DNA of 64,000 nucleotides. Origin: Basidiobolus meristosporus CBS 931.73. Lineage: Eukaryota > Fungi > Basidiobolomycota. Within the stretch, counting starts at the first letter, position 1; each line of letters begins with the position of its first letter. The position numbers and the translations under genes were made by a program. Location of the stretch: the NCBI GenBank assembly GCA_002104905.1, contig MCFE01000080.1, forward strand, positions 1 through 64,000, read 5' to 3'. The notes under the pieces were generated by a model that saw only the letters and a program-made list of their open reading frames with translations, did not search any database and was not told where the DNA came from. Of the stretch, positions 17,390 through 27,600 are shown piece by piece.

Positions 17390-18393
17390 CCTGGGAATGC
17401 AGTATATCACGATGAGTTCGTCCCCGCTTTAAGCGTAACCCCGCCACATAGAAAGTATATCATTGATTAAAATATTTGCAAACAACCAGTGGTTACCTGC
17501 GATTGTATAGAGCATGTGATGGCCAAAAGGCTCAACCCACCGCTATGACTCATTACACAAGCAGGGCAGCGGGATTCAATGGATAGAGTATGGACAGCGT
17601 ATACGTAACTGTGAGCAGGTGCGCCATTAATCCTAATATTGACGCATTTACTCCACATACACCCGTGGATTGCACCAAACAGGTAGATATTGCTAGTGGA
17701 ATTTATGCCGTTTCAGAGGGCCACTTTTCATTTGAATGCAGGCTGCTCGGCTAGCACCACATCCTAGTCATCTGGTCACGCTGGCGTCTCATCCAACAGA
17801 GCTTCTGTATTATACAGATCTGCTGAATAAACCTTTCCACAACGGTAGCACAAGCCATGCCAATAACGACTATCGCGGTGAGGCCGAACCTCGAATCATC
17901 CATGTTCCCCTGGCTCCTGAGGAGAACAGGAGGGGTAAATGGAAATCCCACCCATGATCCTCGGTAATCATCAGTGCTCGTACACATTGCACCATGGCTT
18001 GAATTCGGATATCAGGAAGAAACCCATCCTCAGAGCTGACTCTTGATGCTATATCGATTGCATAACCAGTTATCAAACCAGTTTCTCTTGGGATTGTACG
18101 GAAAACCATCAGAAATTAAAGTATGAGCGTCTTTTTCCCTGCCATCCCTCTCTCACCCGTCTCTCAACTCTTATTATAATTACCGTTTAATCCCTCCGAG
18201 CTCTATTTAGCGCTTGTACCCCCGCCCTAACATATTCATATATACCTATTTCCTCATCTCCACGCACTCTGCAGAGTGACCAGGCGTAAGTGTGCATTTT
18301 ACTCTTGTCCTTCTGACCTTACTTTTTACCTTGCCTTGGCGAAGCATTCCCAGTCCGCTTGATTGAGCATTTTTATGTCAGCTTGAGAAAGAG

Positions 18394-18609
18394 ATGTACT
18401 CCTCAGCAATCATCACCAACAACAGCCAGACCACAGTTGCGTCTCCAAAGCAGGATTTGGAGGAGGAGCTAGACGACCCCATGGAGCTAGATGAGGACAA
18501 CAACACACCGGTCATACCGGAGTACGCACTTCGACGGAGAGGCGCCATAGCCGTGGTGGACAAGTCGGTGCAATCCTTCTTTGCCACCCGAATACCCAGC
18601 GGAAACTGA
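18394..18609 (+). CDS. 71-aa acidic microprotein with an RRRGAI PKA-pseudosubstrate-like motif
   Basis: ATG-initiated ORF. A plausible 5'-UTR intron (GTAAGT 18286 to CAG 18381) ends 12 nt before the ATG, with TATATA near 18240 and a pyrimidine-rich leader. No homologue is recognised. Confidence 0.55.
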   Translation: MYSSAIITNNSQTTVASPKQDLEEELDDPMELDEDNNTPVIPEYALRRRGAIAVVDKSVQSFFATRIPSGN

Positions 18610-20105
18610 GCCCCGCGCTCACAATTTCCCATTTTTTTGTATATTCCTTTCTTATTCATTAGGCTAGCTCTACGCTTCATTCATCTCTGGAGATAGCTGA
18701 GTAAATGTTTATTTTCGCTTTGAAACATCATTTTGAGCCTTACGGCCTTGTCTTGAACTGTGGGTGAGGCGGATACTGACCTTCATCTGCCAACCACCGA
18801 CCAACGCAAGTGAGCAGCCCATCGTATACAACAGTGCGGCTCTAGTCAGAGCGTAGCTACGAGACACCCAGGCCAGAGATCAATGGGGGGGGGTCCACTT
18901 ATATAAGTGGAATTTCACGCTAGCAAGAGTCAGATTTGTTTACCCATTATTGAACGAGCCGGTGGTGAGGTTCGATAGGGGCCGGATTGGTTGCTGAAAT
19001 GCCCGTGTAACAACATAGAAATTTTTCACTCCCCAGCATCGTATATGGCCAGCGTGTATGCTAGTGTTCACCCACCAGCAGGACATCCAGACCCATGTCA
19101 AGACCGGTTAGAGAGGACTAGATCAGAACAAATCCCATTTTCCTCATCCACAGGCCGGCCGCATCACGGTTGCGCGTCAGCGACGGCCAGCTTCATTCAT
19201 AAGCTTGTGCCACCGTAGCATTGCCTGGAGATGCTGTGAATCTTCGGTGCTTACTCCATGATGCAAGATGCCCGTGATTGCGCAAACAAGTCGCCCATCG
19301 GGTGATCCAGCTGCCAATGCCTGGCAACTGGTAATTCTAGCCAGTGGAACCAGTTCACCCCGTCTAAAAGGGTGGTAGCTAGCCCCATCATTTCCATGGT
19401 AGCAACGGCGGCATCATTCAATTCGCAGGCCGATTGCTGTATATAGATGAGTCGTTACTAGTTCCATGGCAATTGGGGTCACAGATACACCGTGCCAATC
19501 CTTGCCTCTTGTGACCAAGATGGCACATTTCCATGATGTGGGGGTCATTGCTGCTCCCTTACATTAGGCAAGGGACTTGGGATGGGAAGCCCCTGGCCAA
19601 TGTCCGGAAGCAGATCAGGCTGGAGATTGGGTTTTGGAGGATGTCTCTGGAGAAACCCAGTTGCAATCCCCTCAGTGCGCAACGGGCGTGGGGCATGACC
19701 CTTTCACTGGGTCATTGCAAGACCACGAGGTGGTGGTTGAGACATCGCGCATGCAGTGCCTCGGCAATGGAATTCCAAGGATTGTAACAATAAGGGTTTA
19801 TGAGTTGCACTGAAACCTTGGAGTCAGGTTCAAAGCGGTCGCAGCGGAGGAAATGATTCAATCATGTCCAAGTAGGCCCATCGCTCAATTTAGAGTGAAA
19901 CAACTCTATCTATCCTGTGCAGGATCCCATCGCCCACTGGATGCCGTCATCGCAGAGCATCAGGAATCGCTTCATTCTTGGTAGTAGCATTTGATGTGCT
20001 TTCGTGCAACTCGAGTTCGTCTATAAAGCCCTAGGTGTGATGGCCGCCTGCAACCAACCCAACGAACATAACGTCCATTACCCCCACTCGTTGCAGTCGT
20101 TAACG

Positions 20106-20969
20106 ATGTCCAGTACGGCGGTCCTCAGCATTGCCCCCATCCACGAGTTTCCTCATGTCGCAGACCTCGACGCACATCAGGATCTCTCAAAGCCACTTGA
20201 TTCCCAACCCACCAGCCTCCCCGACCCCTCAGCCAAAATCGCCGAGTATGTTCGAACGGTGCAATTCCCTGGCAAGGCGGAGTTCCGGGAGATCCTGGCT
20301 GATCGTCAGCGAACCAACGATCTGTATCAATATATCCTAGAGACCCGCAAGACCCTCGATCATCTAACCAAAGAGTGTGAAGACGCTCGCACCCAATGCA
20401 TCAGCGAGCTGCCTGAGAGCTGGACGGTGCGTATCTCGCCTTACTTCGAGGACGCACATCAGATGGCCATCCAGCGGTTTCATGCCCCTCAGTCTTCCTA
20501 CTTCCTGCCATCCCATGACGAGCAGATCTTGGCGCTTGTAAGGCAGTGGAACGTCTTTCCAGAGTCCATCTTTGCCTTCCCCCACGGCCGCGAGAGAATC
20601 CTGGCATGGATCAAGACCACCTACGAGCTGGAACGCGCAGCGGTGCGCAACAAAATCCTTGGGCTTCGAATGAGCACGCGCAAGAACCGCAAACTCAATG
20701 GCAAGAAGCTGAGCCAGGAGCTGCTTCGCTCCACCAGGCTTCCCGTGACTCTTCAGTCCATCCAGAAAGCTGTGTTGCTGCGCCATCTGGCCAAGATGTC
20801 TGGTGCCTGGGATGGTATCAGAGCCCCCGACACCACACAGAGGCAGCAGCAATTTTGGCTGGACTACCTTCAAGAGTTGCACACCCTTCGTGCCATGGCC
20901 CGTCACAAGGCCGAAGCCCGTCTCTCCAAGGTATTGAAGGAGGACCAGAGAAATCACGGGCCTTATTAA
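20106..20969 (+). CDS. Uncharacterised intronless protein (about 287 aa from ATG 20106; the frame is open from 20004)
   Basis: Long GC-rich ORF with natural, helical-looking composition. TATAAA at 20022-20027; another in-frame ATG at 20040. Confidence 0.7.
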   Translation: MSSTAVLSIAPIHEFPHVADLDAHQDLSKPLDSQPTSLPDPSAKIAEYVRTVQFPGKAEFREILADRQRTNDLYQYILETRKTLDHLTKECEDARTQCISELPESWTVRISPYFEDAHQMAIQRFHAPQSSYFLPSHDEQILALVRQWNVFPESIFAFPHGRERILAWIKTTYELERAAVRNKILGLRMSTRKNRKLNGKKLSQELLRSTRLPVTLQSIQKAVLLRHLAKMSGAWDGIRAPDTTQRQQQFWLDYLQELHTLRAMARHKAEARLSKVLKEDQRNHGPY

Positions 20970-21854
20970 TGGTATTAGGGCCAGAGTTGACTTGTCCTCT
21001 GCAGCTATTAATTGAACAATGATCTTTCGTGTAACATCGGTTTCAAATTGAATCAGCCTTCATGGCTCGAGGTCTCAGAGCAGAGTCGATTGCCTGTATA
21101 TTTGTATTGCTAACTAAAATGTATTTCTGGTTAAACCATCGATCCATCTTCGCCTACCTCGCTGATATTATGGTGGCTGATCTTTCATGAATCCATCTTT
21201 CTGACAAACAATCAGCACTGCTGATGTGAGCGTGTACAAAGAAACCATATACGGGTTGTCCCAGTAGGGCCGGGTGCGTTTCCACCAAGGATCCTGCGGG
21301 TTGCCACTGGTTTGTCCGGATGCGCTTCATACCAGAGGCGAAGCTGTGGTCATGGAGCACACGGAGTGTGTGTGGAGTGCAGATCATGGCCGTCTCCAGA
21401 TGCGGGTTCGCATTTCAGGTTTTCTCTTCCTTTTGGAGGGATTCCAAGAGATGGCCAAAATCCTTGATACACTACGGCACATAGGATTACTCGATTCCCG
21501 AATCGGTTTACCAGAGGCACGCCATTCACTTGATTGTCCTGCAATGAGGCAACAGTAGGGTCCTTTGTTGGATAGCCCTTATAATATGCATGCAGGTGAT
21601 TAAACAACTCTTTATCCGACCATTCGCGCAGGCGGAACGAGCGTTGTGTAGGTGGCTACTCGAGGGTGGATTACGCTCGTTGTTGGGGTTTGTATAAGAT
21701 GGACTCGGCGGTACGTGCACAAAAGCTATTTTCAAAGATTTTGGGAGATTCAATATCGACCCCTTCACAAGAGCGTATAATCTACGCGGAATGCTGCACT
21801 AGCTGGTGAGTCCAGCATTATTCTATTCCATTGAATCCAAAGATTGCTGCTATT

Positions 21855-22520
21855 ATGAGCCTGTATTCGACATTCCACCCTTCTGATCATGTCACTACTC
21901 CTTTGGTGCATGACGACAGTTCCATGCGATACTCTGGTAGCCCACCCACCATCCCACCGAAAGTGTACACTATCCGTAGACTCGAGTATGGCCCAGGCAC
22001 TCTGGAATATGAACTCACACTCGACTATTTAAGACGATCTCGGAGTGTAGAGATATTCCGTAGAGAATGCAACCGACAGCCATCTCATCCCATCTCCCCT
22101 AACTTACGTCATCTTCCCATGTGTTGCGTATCCCTTCCTCCCAATCCGGTAGACTCGGCATTTACCCAACATGAATGCACCACCACGGGGGAGGAGGAGG
22201 GAGATGAGAAACTAGACATGTTGGATGTAAACGAGGACACCCCTGCTCCTCCATCACTCCAGCAGCTAAGACAGTGCTTCAGACCCGACTCACTTGGCCA
22301 AATCGACATTGAGAGCCAACAACCCATCATCCCTGCCGGATCGCTGCTCTTTTTGTTTGGCTTCATATTCATGCCTCTCTGGTGGCTTGGCTCCTACTAC
22401 CCCAACCCTTCCAGCTTGGAAATCCACCTGCAATGGCGATGTTATAATCGTATGATGTCCGTCGTTTCGATCTTTCTGTGCTGCTTCGTTATTGCGATGC
22501 TCGTCTGGTGGTTGAATTAA
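21855..22520 (+). CDS. Uncharacterised membrane protein with two C-terminal transmembrane segments
   Basis: Low-complexity N-terminus, then LLFLFGFIFMPLWWLGSY..WRCYNRMMSVVSIFLCCFVIAMLVWWL, a pattern common in fungal C-terminally anchored proteins. First in-frame ATG at 21855. Confidence 0.75.
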   Translation: MSLYSTFHPSDHVTTPLVHDDSSMRYSGSPPTIPPKVYTIRRLEYGPGTLEYELTLDYLRRSRSVEIFRRECNRQPSHPISPNLRHLPMCCVSLPPNPVDSAFTQHECTTTGEEEGDEKLDMLDVNEDTPAPPSLQQLRQCFRPDSLGQIDIESQQPIIPAGSLLFLFGFIFMPLWWLGSYYPNPSSLEIHLQWRCYNRMMSVVSIFLCCFVIAMLVWWLN

Positions 22521-23290: not shown

Positions 23291-24667
23291 CTAGTCAATG
23301 TTGATTCCTTTAATAGCCATCATGGCGGTTAGGGCTGCTCCTACTCCACTACCATCCTTGGCCAACACCAACTGTATTTTCTTGGCAGTGTCCTTGCCTA
23401 GAAGTTGCTCAAGAACCTTGATCAACGACTCCTTGAATCCAGGCAAGAATTGATACACTGTTCCGTCAATACCAACTGTCACCTTTTCCGCGAGAAGATC
23501 CTTCCGCTTCAAAAGCACAGCTGCCAGTGCTGCTCCACTAAGCTGCGCTGCTCTCTCGGATACTAATTGAGCCACCGACTTCACCAAGAGTCGATCTCCA
23601 GCTGAGGTCTCGGGGATTCCCATTGTATTCTCCAAGATCAGCTTGACCTCCTCAAGATCCGCACTGTTATCAGAAATGATCGATGAGACATAAGCTGTGT
23701 CGAAGTTGAACGGCTTGTTCATCTCTGTCGAGCAGTGTGATCCGAAGATGATGTTACGGTCTATCAGGTCGATAAGTATGTTGCGCGTAATCTCTCCAAG
23801 ATACAGTCCAGAGATCATCTTCTCAAAGATTTGATGGAATGGTGCAGGGGATGAGTTGTCCAAGCGATTGTCATACTTCGTCACTGGAAGGACCTTCTTG
23901 TCGTTGCCAAAGGCTCCCCACTCCATGTTCACAATCATCTCCGCCTCGTCATTGGGCCCATCCCACTTGGGAATGGCCTCAATCCGCTCAAGGTACGCGG
24001 TGTTGGTGCCTGTACCAAAGATCACACCAGCAGTGGTTGTGGGCTCGGCGTATCCAGCAGCGAGAAGTGTTCCGACCGTGTCGTTCACCAGCGCAGCAAC
24101 CTTGATCTTGTTCAAGTGCTTGCGGTTCAAGGCATCCTGCAGCAGCTGGGCCACATCATGGCCAACCACGTTGGTTGCTGTGAAGCTCTTGGTCCATTGC
24201 AAGAGTTTGCCACGGTTGATAGCAGTCTGGTTGATTGGGAAAGAGAAGGTGAAGCCAAGCGGGATGACCGCAGCTTGTCGTAGTAGTTCAGCTTCAGCAC
24301 GTGAGGTAATAAAATCCTCAACACATTCAGCAAGAAAATCGAAAAGGTATTTTCCATCGCCAGTCTTATGCTCCAAAGAGAGAGCATATTTCTGTTGAGT
24401 CACTTCAAATTCTCCACCTCCTTTCAAATTCACCTGGCAAACACGAAAATTGGTCCCACCGAGGTCAAGTGCCAGATATGCCCCGGTCTCTTTGCCTGTG
24501 GGACGACCAGTGACATAGCTGGGAATCATGGCAAGGTTCTGACCGTTCGCTTTCAGTCCATCCTCCATGGCTTTTATAAAACTATCGACGATCTCGCGAA
24601 GTTTGGCCTCCGGAAGGTTGAACTGGGATTCAAGCTCGCGGAATGCAGAATTCTGTTTTTCGTCCAT
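23291..24667 (-). CDS. HXK: Hexokinase, copy A (intronless)
   Basis: Motifs ALDLGGTNFRV, PLGFTFSFP, WTK, VNDTVGT, GTGTN, NMEWGAF, FEKMISGLYLGE and DGSGVGAA. First ATG at 24667; TATATAA about 50 nt upstream. Confidence 0.97.
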   Translation of the reverse strand: MDEKQNSAFRELESQFNLPEAKLREIVDSFIKAMEDGLKANGQNLAMIPSYVTGRPTGKETGAYLALDLGGTNFRVCQVNLKGGGEFEVTQQKYALSLEHKTGDGKYLFDFLAECVEDFITSRAEAELLRQAAVIPLGFTFSFPINQTAINRGKLLQWTKSFTATNVVGHDVAQLLQDALNRKHLNKIKVAALVNDTVGTLLAAGYAEPTTTAGVIFGTGTNTAYLERIEAIPKWDGPNDEAEMIVNMEWGAFGNDKKVLPVTKYDNRLDNSSPAPFHQIFEKMISGLYLGEITRNILIDLIDRNIIFGSHCSTEMNKPFNFDTAYVSSIISDNSADLEEVKLILENTMGIPETSAGDRLLVKSVAQLVSERAAQLSGAALAAVLLKRKDLLAEKVTVGIDGTVYQFLPGFKESLIKVLEQLLGKDTAKKIQLVLAKDGSGVGAALTAMMAIKGINID

Positions 24668-27600
24668 TGCAATAGAAGACAAACGATGTTATCTCAGCAC
24701 ATCAGCGAGTATCTTATATAAGTTCACTTGACGAATCATTTAAGCAGTTATTGCTTTCGTAATTTACTGGTAAACCTAAAGTGGTACGACGATGAGTAGC
24801 GCTTGATGTGCATCTGTGGCATCTGATTCGCCCGAGACTAGCTTTTTATCCCAAATAGAACCAGCTTGAAACATTTCCGAGACATGCCAGTATGCCAAAA
24901 GCCCAAGCACTCAGTGGTTTACAGTTAGGGGCTAACTCGAGATAAGATGGCATTCACCGAGGCTTAAGCACAGCACAAGTCATTCCATTACAGAGTGGTA
25001 CAACCAGATGAACACCTGTATCCGGATCCATCACCTGAGAGTGAGGTAAGCTTCTCTCGAAGCCCATTGAAGTCTCTGGGAATGAAACCGGCTCCAACGT
25101 CATGCTAACGTCTTGGTTTCTCATCATTTCAACGCATAAGCATAGGCAGCCAATCTAGCCAAAAATATTCTTCCCTCACCCTCTGAATTGGTCATCAAGC
25201 AGAAGTATGCCCATCCATTTACTAGATACACGTGCAAACGGCATCTTTCCTGGCGCGATTGGCATAGCGTGAGAACCTGTTTACGTGCACACCAAGGTTT
25301 CTGGAGCAGTAGCCCTTTGAACTTGAGCACACTCCAGCCATTGGCCCTAAACCAATGGGATGGCGCCTACTGATGGTTGTGCTAGTGGGTTGATTTGCAT
25401 TCCCGAAGTTTGAGCAGCCATAGGATCTCTACTGTAGATCAAGTACATAACTCTTTGGCTCCCAGTCATATAAACCACAAGTGGCTCAAAAAGCCGAGAG
25501 TGTACTTGCTTGGCGCTTTTTTTCAGCACCGATTTCTTGTTTCGGTCGATCTGGGCAAACATTTTGGCTACAGCATTGGCAATAGATGTCTTCATTGCTG
25601 ACTAACTGAAATGAGAGGATTATTGATTTTTTGTTGTGAAAAACGACAACTAATGACTGTAAATCTGCGTGGCAGGCCTACTAAAGGAAAATGACTCTTC
25701 ATGGCCATCTGTATGCCACTTCTTGACAATTACCATGCTGGAACCAATCATATATGCTTGGGATATCCAATTGCCCACACTACCAGGAGTCGATTCTTGA
25801 TTCATCGTAAATCATGGACAGATTGACCTACTATTTCTCGATTAATCTGATCGAGTGGTGTTCACCAAGTTTCCCGGGATGGCCAATAAGCAACAGCATG
25901 GTTAAATCTGGAAGTCAGAATGCTAGACATAAATGGATGAACCTCACCAAAACTCGATTTGCTTGAATAGTCGTTCAAGCCTCAAGTTCCTTAAATATCT
26001 ATTGCCTACACAAATGGAGAAATTTGCATCCTAACCGTGAATTATGGTCTCGTGAAATATGTATGGAGAACCCAAAGGCCAAGCTGATGTCGGCACCGCG
26101 CCAGGCATAGGGATATTGCGGAGTAGACTGTTCTAGAGTTGATGTAAGAAGGCAATCGGTTAAATTGCCTATCGACCTAGGACGATGCTCGGCACCATTT
26201 CACAATATGAGGCTTTTCAATGTAGAGCGTTCACCAAGTTGGTCACAGGGCCACCATGCCTTTCTCATACAGAACCATCTCCACTCCATCGAATTTCCTG
26301 GAATACCCCGATACAAATATTGGGCATTGCGCTGGCCCAGTAATTTGCACCAATTGCCTAGACGGTGCTACGAAGTCCATGCAATCCCTTATTTCACTGC
26401 TCGGATGATCATACCTCCTGCCCACCAAATCCCCTTTGATCCCACTTGGCTGGAGTTGGCTCATTTGTATGGTCCATGGAAACTGGCAGCGAACACCCCA
26501 CTGTCGTCAGGGATACATACGACATAGACGCTGGCGTGTGAGCTAGATTAAAGTGTAAAACATGTGACATAGGCTATTACGTCTATCTGACCAGCTGGAC
26601 AACGCTGAGGTTGGTTTTCTTCCCGAATGGCCTGGTCATATCCAGCGCAGCTGAGCCGGGATCTCCAACGACCTATTCCATCATGAATCCAAGAGGCTGA
26701 ACCCACTCGAACAAATATATTCATAATTCGTATAACCCAAGGCCTACGTTTACCACATATATTATGGTATCGAGAACTTTCCATTTCTAGCTGCAATTAA
26801 TATTCGAAAGTGATGTTGTCTCAGCTTCCTAATAAAGCAGCGCACCTTTCTACCAGTCCGTCATGTTGTAGAGTGGTTCCTTGCTGGAAAATATATTTGG
26901 AAGAAAGCTCGTACCAAAGATGGCATCCTTCCCATTTTATTCAAGGTTGTCACATTCGTGGCTGAGTTTACTGGTGTCTGATCAAGGACTGGAATAGGGG
27001 CAGGTGGCTCTACAACGCTTTCGCTACCATTGACCTGGGAGTCGTACGATCATTGCAGGCGAGAATGGTGGCCTGCTGTATTGGCCTATGTTACGGCCCT
27101 ACGCATTTCGTAATTGTTTGGGCATGGATACGGATTGCGTTGCAACCAGTTGACGAGTGGTTTGTTGGACGGAAAATCCGTAATTCTTTGGCCTAGTTCC
27201 TCTGAATGGCCACCTATCTAAATGGTTATGTCAGCTGCATCCCAATTTGGCAGCGGAATAATGATTTCGTTACCCATGCATATTTGCTAGGTCAATTTTG
27301 TGGCTCATTTCTCGCCGGGATACCCCGGTCGGTAGTAACTAACGTTGGCAGAGCTAAAATGCATGGCTATAAATGAGAATTGGATGCACCAGAATTGAAT
27401 CAAATCTAATATTCATTTCCACCTGCTTGGAGGTTATCTGTCCGGTAGTACTCCGAAATGTCTCCCATCACTTTGGATGAAAAACAAATGAGCGTTTTGC
27501 TTGACCTGGAGAGTCAGTTCACCATCTCCGAGGAAAAGCTCAAGGAAATTGTGGATTCTTTCCTCCACGAGATGGAGTTGGGATTGAAAGCTTCTGGCCA

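Follow-up and report, generated by a model that had tools for sequence, protein, structure and literature searches.

A lineage-restricted Basidiobolus microprotein carrying an RRRGAI motif: a candidate pseudosubstrate inhibitor of PKA

Introduction

Does a 71-aa open reading frame (ORF) of Basidiobolus meristosporus CBS 931.73, lying in DNA between recognisable genes and carrying the hexamer RRRGAI, encode a stand-alone inhibitor of the PKA catalytic subunit (PKA-C), or is the likeness of its motif to known PKA inhibitors a coincidence? To our knowledge, the cAMP-sensitive regulatory subunit is the sole established brake on the PKA catalytic subunit in fungi, and we know of stand-alone PKI-type inhibitors described in animals only. 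A PKI-like pseudosubstrate motif that blocks PKA-C is also embedded in ARHGAP36. In the literature searched, no fungal stand-alone PKA pseudosubstrate inhibitor was found.

PKI isoforms are largely unstructured proteins of 70-75 aa, with an N-terminal pseudosubstrate domain and a Leu-rich nuclear export signal (NES) (PMC7723848), and RI regulatory subunits hold the C subunit via the sequence RRRRGAI, in which the Ala is non-phosphorylatable (PMC5987730). Moreover, the Smoothened C-tail is reported to have a PKI-like pseudosubstrate motif blocking PKA-C that evolved outside PKI and the R subunits (PMC13186710). The ORF considered here was first pointed out in a preliminary description of 64,000 nucleotides of contig MCFE01000080.1, the whole of which is hereafter called the window, where it was read as a possible PKI-like inhibitor.

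Results

The ORF runs from ATG to TGA at positions 18394-18609 (+) of the window, stop codon included, as a single-exon coding sequence (CDS) with in-frame stops on its flanks, and its ATG is preceded by in-frame stops whether the putative intron upstream is kept or removed. In the encoded protein, residues 21-35 are DLEEELDDPMELDED and Leu46 to Val54 read LRRRGAIAV, so that RRRGAI occupies residues 47-52, encoded at positions 18532-18549. Acidic residues outnumber basic ones by 12 to 6, and the protein is mostly disordered by prediction, with a mean pLDDT of 0.34 (0-1 scale) in the ESM Atlas model. AlphaFold2, run with the four-sequence alignment described below, gave a mean pLDDT of 62 and only two short helices (residues 43-48 and 57-66), the best values, about 80, being reached at residues 41-50. 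The preliminary description of an acidic, probably disordered 71-aa ORF with RRRGAI at 18532-18549 thus agrees with our reading in coordinates, charge and low pLDDT.

In a word-indexed search a sole annotated relative came up: K7432_006542 (P0002), a hypothetical protein of 70 aa from Basidiobolus ranarum, with 72% identity. Its locus (L001) is syntenic with the window, having a CCA-adding-enzyme (PolyA_pol) gene upstream and a conserved gene downstream, and the remaining spacers of the two loci did not align. In the + frame, the comparison with P0002 showed 39.2 synonymous and 24.8 non-synonymous differences; pS was 0.80 (saturated) and pN 0.154 over the whole CDS, and pN was 0.073 for residues 24-71. 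An orthologue at 72% identity with saturated dS also suggests that the genome of the window is that of a Basidiobolus distinct from B. ranarum. Furthermore, start and stop codons are kept, the length stays at 70-74 aa across the four copies identified, and a 100-aa antisense ORF that overlaps the CDS is not an ATG ORF in B. ranarum. The 71-aa ORF is a real gene under purifying selection: with dN far below dS, synteny and two paralogues, the conservation of the ORF exceeds chance, which the motif alone does not. The existence of orthologues, on which the preliminary description had made its reading depend, was borne out by this syntenic B. ranarum orthologue together with two B. ranarum paralogues.

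The conserved downstream neighbour, at window positions 20004-20969 (+), is an uncharacterised 321-aa ORF with about 64% amino acid identity to a 287-aa B. ranarum protein without a Pfam family. Further along are an uncharacterised 229-aa ORF with a hydrophobic segment at its C-terminal end (21831-22520, +) and a hexokinase-like ORF of 463 aa (23291-24682, -).

Searching 1.84 billion representative proteins with a HMMER profile added the two B. ranarum paralogues, P0003 (71 aa) and P0004 (74 aa); the other matches of this search, P0005 and P0006, were discarded as repetitive false positives. A profile search of 5.8 billion clusters recovered the same four proteins and nothing further above noise, and a scan of metagenome contigs yielded 210 pattern matches, none of them confirmed by tblastn. 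No family, PKI included, was assigned to any of the four members by Pfam-A hmmscan at E up to 10; no PDB chain, and no PKI chain, was matched by the family profile; and no paralogue was found inside the window. As far as these databases see, that is, across annotated proteins and metagenome contigs, with unannotated fungal copies possible, the family appears so far only in Basidiobolus. A spread over early-diverging fungi, for which the preliminary description had suggested searching, did not emerge, the collections searched showing one genus only.

P0003 adjoins transposon debris, since the segment directly upstream of it (L002 1-170) resembles a copia-type reverse transcriptase fragment (…DLGELMYFLGLQI…SKYISDIL…). 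Apart from Basidiobolus, two insect-like AT-rich Logan contigs, L004 (6001-6120; SRR29340081) and L005 (4593-4700; SRR7796605), share a conserved exon (VPQYALRRRGAICV) that reads M(RFIRM)VPKLPLDIxVPQYALRRRGAICV, has a GT donor after it, and so bears RRRGAI. This exon matches the P0004 core at 11 of 13 residues, but at a sub-threshold E of 2-10, and the match is probably due to chance; look-ups of the corresponding gene in the PDB and the Atlas were blank.

The alignment (A2) comprises four sequences from two species (the window protein, P0002, P0003 and P0004) and has 20 invariant columns, 14 of which fall at residues 41-66 (I41, P42, Y44, A45, L46, R48, R49, G50, V55, D56, S58, Q60, F62 and R66). 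The 13 of these within residues 41-62 define a conserved core, IPEYALRRRGAIAVVDKSVQSF (18514-18579, +), with the consensus IP[EQ]YAL[RK]RRG[AG][ILM]x[VI]VDxS[VL]QxF, which also holds the modelled PKA-C interface described below apart from residue 39. An acidic block, EELDDPMELDED (residues 24-35; 18463-18498, +), holds three further invariant residues of A2, D28, M30 and D33, and lies outside the predicted PKA interface.

Within the core, the pseudosubstrate-like hexamer RRRGAI (18532-18549, +) would span P-4 to P+1, with Ala51 as P0. In the four members P-4 is Arg or Lys, P-3 and P-2 (R48 and R49) are invariant Arg, P-1 (G50) is invariant Gly, P0 (position 51) is A/A/A/G and never Ser or Thr, and P+1 (position 52) is I/L/M/I, always hydrophobic. 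The autoinhibitory site of PKG I alpha likewise has Gly at P0. Two expectations had been set out in the preliminary description: that P0 is never replaced by Ser or Thr, which holds in this alignment of four sequences from two species (Ala in three, Gly in one), and that RRRGAI is the most conserved block, which holds in that RRG is invariant, but the most conserved stretch is IPEYAL-RRG and not the hexamer.

The motif itself is not rare. The window ATG-ORFs of at least 50 aa add up to 18,079 residues and contain a single match to the pattern RR.[AG][ILMV], namely the RRRGAI of the 71-aa ORF; alone, the pattern is found at roughly the chance rate, about once per window. A selection bias also applies to RRRGAI, because such motifs were deliberately sought.

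Several non-coding elements around the CDS are shared with L001. A conserved upstream block, AACCAGTTATCAAACCAGTTTC (18064-18085, +), is nearly identical in L001 and is a candidate promoter or regulatory element; it contains two ACCAGTT half-sites, and these repeats, 12 nt apart, are a candidate transcription-factor site. The TATA-like block ATATTCATATATA (18232-18244, +), an identical 13-mer at the aligned position of L001, is a putative core promoter. A putative 5'UTR intron of 96 nt (18286-18381, +) has a canonical donor and acceptor (GTAAGT...TATGTCAG); its 3' end, TATGTCA(A)G, is kept in L001, where a GACTAAC resembles a branch point, and removal of the intron would take out an upstream out-of-frame ATG at 18375 as well. 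Past the stop codon, two 3'UTR blocks conserved in L001, TGTATATT, which is a PUF-like UGUA element, and TTCTTATTCAT (together 18638-18659, +), have a presumed regulatory role. The upstream, TATA-like, 3' splice and 3'UTR blocks persist between the window and L001 although synonymous sites are saturated.

The PUF/Pumilio-like UGUA element extends to the whole family, lying 29-68 nt past the stop in all four members, divergent paralogues included (window 18638-18645; L001 6257-6264; L003 6293-6300; L002 509-516). It reads TGTATATT at 68 nt past the stop of P0004 and, in L002, TGTATAGT at 50 nt past the stop of P0003. The presence of this element in every member suggests a shared post-transcriptional control.

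No kinase gene was found in the window or the paralogue loci, and PKA-C was for this reason taken from an environmental contig for modelling. A degenerate pattern for WTLCGTPDYLAPE located the metagenome/metatranscriptome contig L023 (Ga0138321_10048779), which encodes a complete 457-aa PKA catalytic subunit at positions 151-1524. With E = 4e-129 against mouse C-alpha and 2e-87 against PKG, this ORF is a bona fide PKA-C, and it is 98% identical to the PKA-C of Anaeromyces robustus (Neocallimastigomycota) over the region searched, residues 140-440. Contigs L030, L077 and L084, from the same collection, are near-identical to L023.

The complex of the 71-aa protein with residues 118-457 of this PKA-C, which comes from another fungal phylum, ATP and two Mg was modelled with ESMFold2. 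Three runs scored 0.92, 0.93 and 0.93, against 0.19 for the best of three controls, none of which had an RRxA-hydrophobic motif. In the calibration, 51 of 78 solved complexes and 2 of 108 mismatched pairs attained that mark, counts that are only a rough guide to the PKA-C complex, since small molecules were included in it and peptides are not covered by the calibration. The runs shared at least 69% of contacts, with a partner pLDDT of at least 49.

The modelled footprint on the 71-aa protein comprises residues 39, 41-42, 44-46, 48-55 and 60 and coincides in part with the conserved block, towards the N-terminal end of the block; both L46 and V55 lie within the interface. On the kinase (mouse PKA-C alpha numbering, which is L023 minus 105), the modelled interface takes in the Gly-rich loop (52-54) and the P+1 loop (197-203), as well as Q84, H87, F129, R133, D166, K168, E170, D184 to F187, 233-236 and 239. 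In the model, Ala51 contacts D166, F187 and C199-T201, i.e., the phospho-acceptor site; Arg49 contacts K168, E170 and T201 to position 203 (Asp in the L023 kinase); Arg48 contacts E170 and F129; Ile52 contacts the P+1 loop; and Tyr44, Ala45 and Leu46 rest on the 235/236/239 pocket, which is the site of PKI Phe10, and on R133. In the B. meristosporus PKA-C itself (P0124), 27 of the 30 interface residues are the same, and so are all the classical peptide-reading residues.

In this model with the catalytic subunit, of the kind that the preliminary description had called for, the contacts amount to a canonical pseudosubstrate pose for the motif (0.93, against 0.19 for the best control). Complexes of PKA with PKI and RI have been solved in the hundreds, and the score of 0.93 therefore measures likeness and may reflect memory and not binding.

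Discussion

Pseudosubstrate inhibition of PKA is, tentatively, the best single reading of the 71-aa protein on its sequence and the complex model, and we give it somewhat less than an even chance. According to this proposal, the free PKA catalytic subunit would take up the core from I41 to F62 in its substrate cleft, where the core would act as a pseudosubstrate that cannot be phosphorylated. Arg48 and Arg49 (P-3 and P-2) would pair with the acidic kinase residues by which substrate arginines are recognised, Ala51 (Gly in one paralogue) would fill the phospho-acceptor site, and Ile52 would sit in the P+1 loop, while Tyr44-Ala45-Leu46 would pack against the alphaF-alphaG hydrophobic pocket that is filled by Phe10 in PKI. 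The outcome would be a stoichiometric, cAMP-independent inhibition, as by PKI and the RI inhibitor site, and without homology to either. Binding, inhibition of PKA, and PKA over a related basophilic kinase as the target remain at the level of inference, because the pass of the model may be memory and because the core fits the motifs of other basophilic kinases too.

The resemblance to PKI is one of design. Both are small (PKI 70-75 aa), mostly unstructured, stand-alone proteins with an Arg-Arg-x-Ala-hydrophobic pseudosubstrate, and in the model an upstream hydrophobic element occupies the same Y235/P236/F239 pocket. In contrast, no sequence homology was detectable by Pfam-A hmmscan or PDB search, and the motif lies in the C-terminal half (residues 47-52 of 71), whereas that of PKI lies in the N-terminal 25 residues. 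P-6 is Ala45 and not Arg, P-11 is Val40 (Asn in P0004) and not Phe, and P-1 is Gly, where the RRNAI of PKI has Asn; the lack of the P-6 Arg and P-11 Phe of PKI had already been remarked in the preliminary description, and both replacements stand in the alignment. The Basidiobolus protein also differs in its acidic N-terminal half and in belonging to a fungal, one-genus family, and a Leu-rich NES of the LALKLAGLDI type was not recognisable in it. Its hydrophobic C-terminal helix (57-66, SVQSFFATR) is conserved in part, and by eye does not match standard NES spacing. Membership of the PKI family was rejected for want of a profile match and of the P-6 Arg and P-11 Phe, and for the misplaced motif. 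The earlier proposal of a PKI-like inhibitor thus survives in the conservation of the motif and in the modelled pose, and fails as homology to PKI, for which Pfam, PDB and HMMER searches were blank.

The core comes closer to RI, with which it shares the literal hexamer RRRGAI, Gly at P-1, Ala at P0 and Ile at P+1, the P0 residue being non-phosphorylatable across the family. The flank of the RI inhibitor site is SAEV, whereas that of the Basidiobolus protein is AVVD. Furthermore, unlike RI, the 71-aa protein has no dimerisation/docking (D/D) domain, no cyclic-nucleotide-binding domains and no Pfam domain at all, and since the cyclic-nucleotide-binding and D/D domains are absent, any inhibition that it exerts would not be relieved by cAMP. 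The motifs of Smoothened and ARHGAP36 are found inside large metazoan signalling proteins, in contrast to this free-standing fungal microprotein. That the protein works like PKI and RI is, from its sequence and the modelled complex, a supported hypothesis.

Although the pseudosubstrate positions are well accounted for, motif-matching on a 22-residue core is open to many readings, and we have spread our expectations over several of them. It is possible, if on balance unlikely, that the core is a short linear motif for another partner, the likeness to RRRGAI being coincidental and the protein a lineage-restricted disordered regulator. Consistent with this, the family has no homology to any described family and is limited to one genus, chance alone would give about one RR.[AG][ILMV] per window, and the conservation goes beyond what a pseudosubstrate needs (I41, P42, Y44, A45, L46, V55, D56, S58, Q60, F62, R66 and D28/M30/D33). 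Against it, the PKA-pseudosubstrate positions behave as expected in all four members, and the complex model is confident and canonical where the controls score low. In fact, D28, M30, D33, S58, F62 and R66 are conserved outside the modelled interface, and because several invariant residues lie there, the 71-aa protein is probably more than a kinase plug, or something else.

Alternatively, the core could serve a basophilic kinase other than PKA as its pseudosubstrate or docking peptide, for instance Snf1/AMPK, a CaMK-type or PKD/Chk-type kinase, or another AGC kinase such as Sch9. We consider this improbable. The Snf1/AMPK rule is hydrophobic-x-basic-x-x-S/T-x-x-x-hydrophobic and that of CaMK/PKD/Chk1 is L-x-R-x-x-S, and the invariant L46 (P-5), R48 (P-3) and V55 (P+4) about the non-phosphorylatable position 51 fit these rules, whereas PKA does not require conservation at P-5 and P+4. 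However, the P-3/P-2 Arg pair, the hydrophobic P+1 and the literal RI hexamer together make the PKA/PKG optimum, and the model finds a use for L46 and V55 in the PKA interface.

A degron reading takes the segment R49-x-x-[ILM]52-x-x-V55-D56-x as D-box-like and the protein as a small one, regulated with the cell cycle, that is an APC/C substrate or inhibits the APC/C as a pseudosubstrate, like Acm1 or Mes1; we regard this reading as very improbable. The D-box consensus is RxxLxx[IV]xN, to which the B. ranarum copies RGALAVVDQ and RGGICVVDN come near; R49 and V55 are invariant, position 52 is I/L/M, and small size and disorder would suit an APC/C substrate. Nevertheless, the Leu of D-box position 4 is present in one of the four members, position 9 varies (K/Q/G/N), KEN and ABBA motifs are absent, and the reading leaves unexplained the best-conserved part, IPEYAL-R, which precedes the would-be D-box.

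The idea of a chance ORF, or of an ORF inside a non-coding RNA, to which the missing Pfam domain and the overlapping 100-aa antisense ORF might point, is hardly credible and already disfavoured by 39 synonymous versus 25 non-synonymous differences with saturated synonymous sites and a pN of 0.073 for residues 24-71, by start and stop codons conserved at 70-74 aa in four copies, and by an antisense ORF with no ATG-ORF counterpart in B. ranarum.

Other short motifs were considered and set aside. By eye, the V-x-x-F spacing is wrong for PP1 RVxF, PVIPEY lacks the second hydrophobic residue of calcineurin PxIxIT, and the eIF4E-binding motif, LIR/AIM, PIP box and classical NLS misfit or are not conserved. 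A Kex2-processed secreted peptide was rejected, as the signal peptide is absent, and so was a 14-3-3 mode III C-terminus, as RIPSGN is missing from P0003 and P0004.

Returning to PKA inhibition, the fuller evolutionary proposal is that a small family of free-standing PKA-C inhibitors, cAMP-independent and acting as pseudosubstrates, arose independently in Basidiobolus. These sequence-unrelated analogues of PKI would combine an RI-type RRRGA[ILM] core with a novel anchor upstream of it, IPEYAL, and their regulation would run through a conserved promoter and the PUF-like 3'UTR element. We put this proposal forward with reserve, as a possibility that we rather doubt as a whole. Should the PKA reading fail, an ordinary lineage-restricted disordered microprotein would remain. 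If it is true, a cAMP-independent microprotein plug of PKA-C would be a new layer in fungal cAMP signalling and a pseudosubstrate inhibitor that arose by convergence, and it might give those who work on fungi a small PKA inhibitor that can be genetically encoded. The 71-aa gene is also an example of the conserved functional microproteins in the 'intergenic' DNA of early-diverging fungi.
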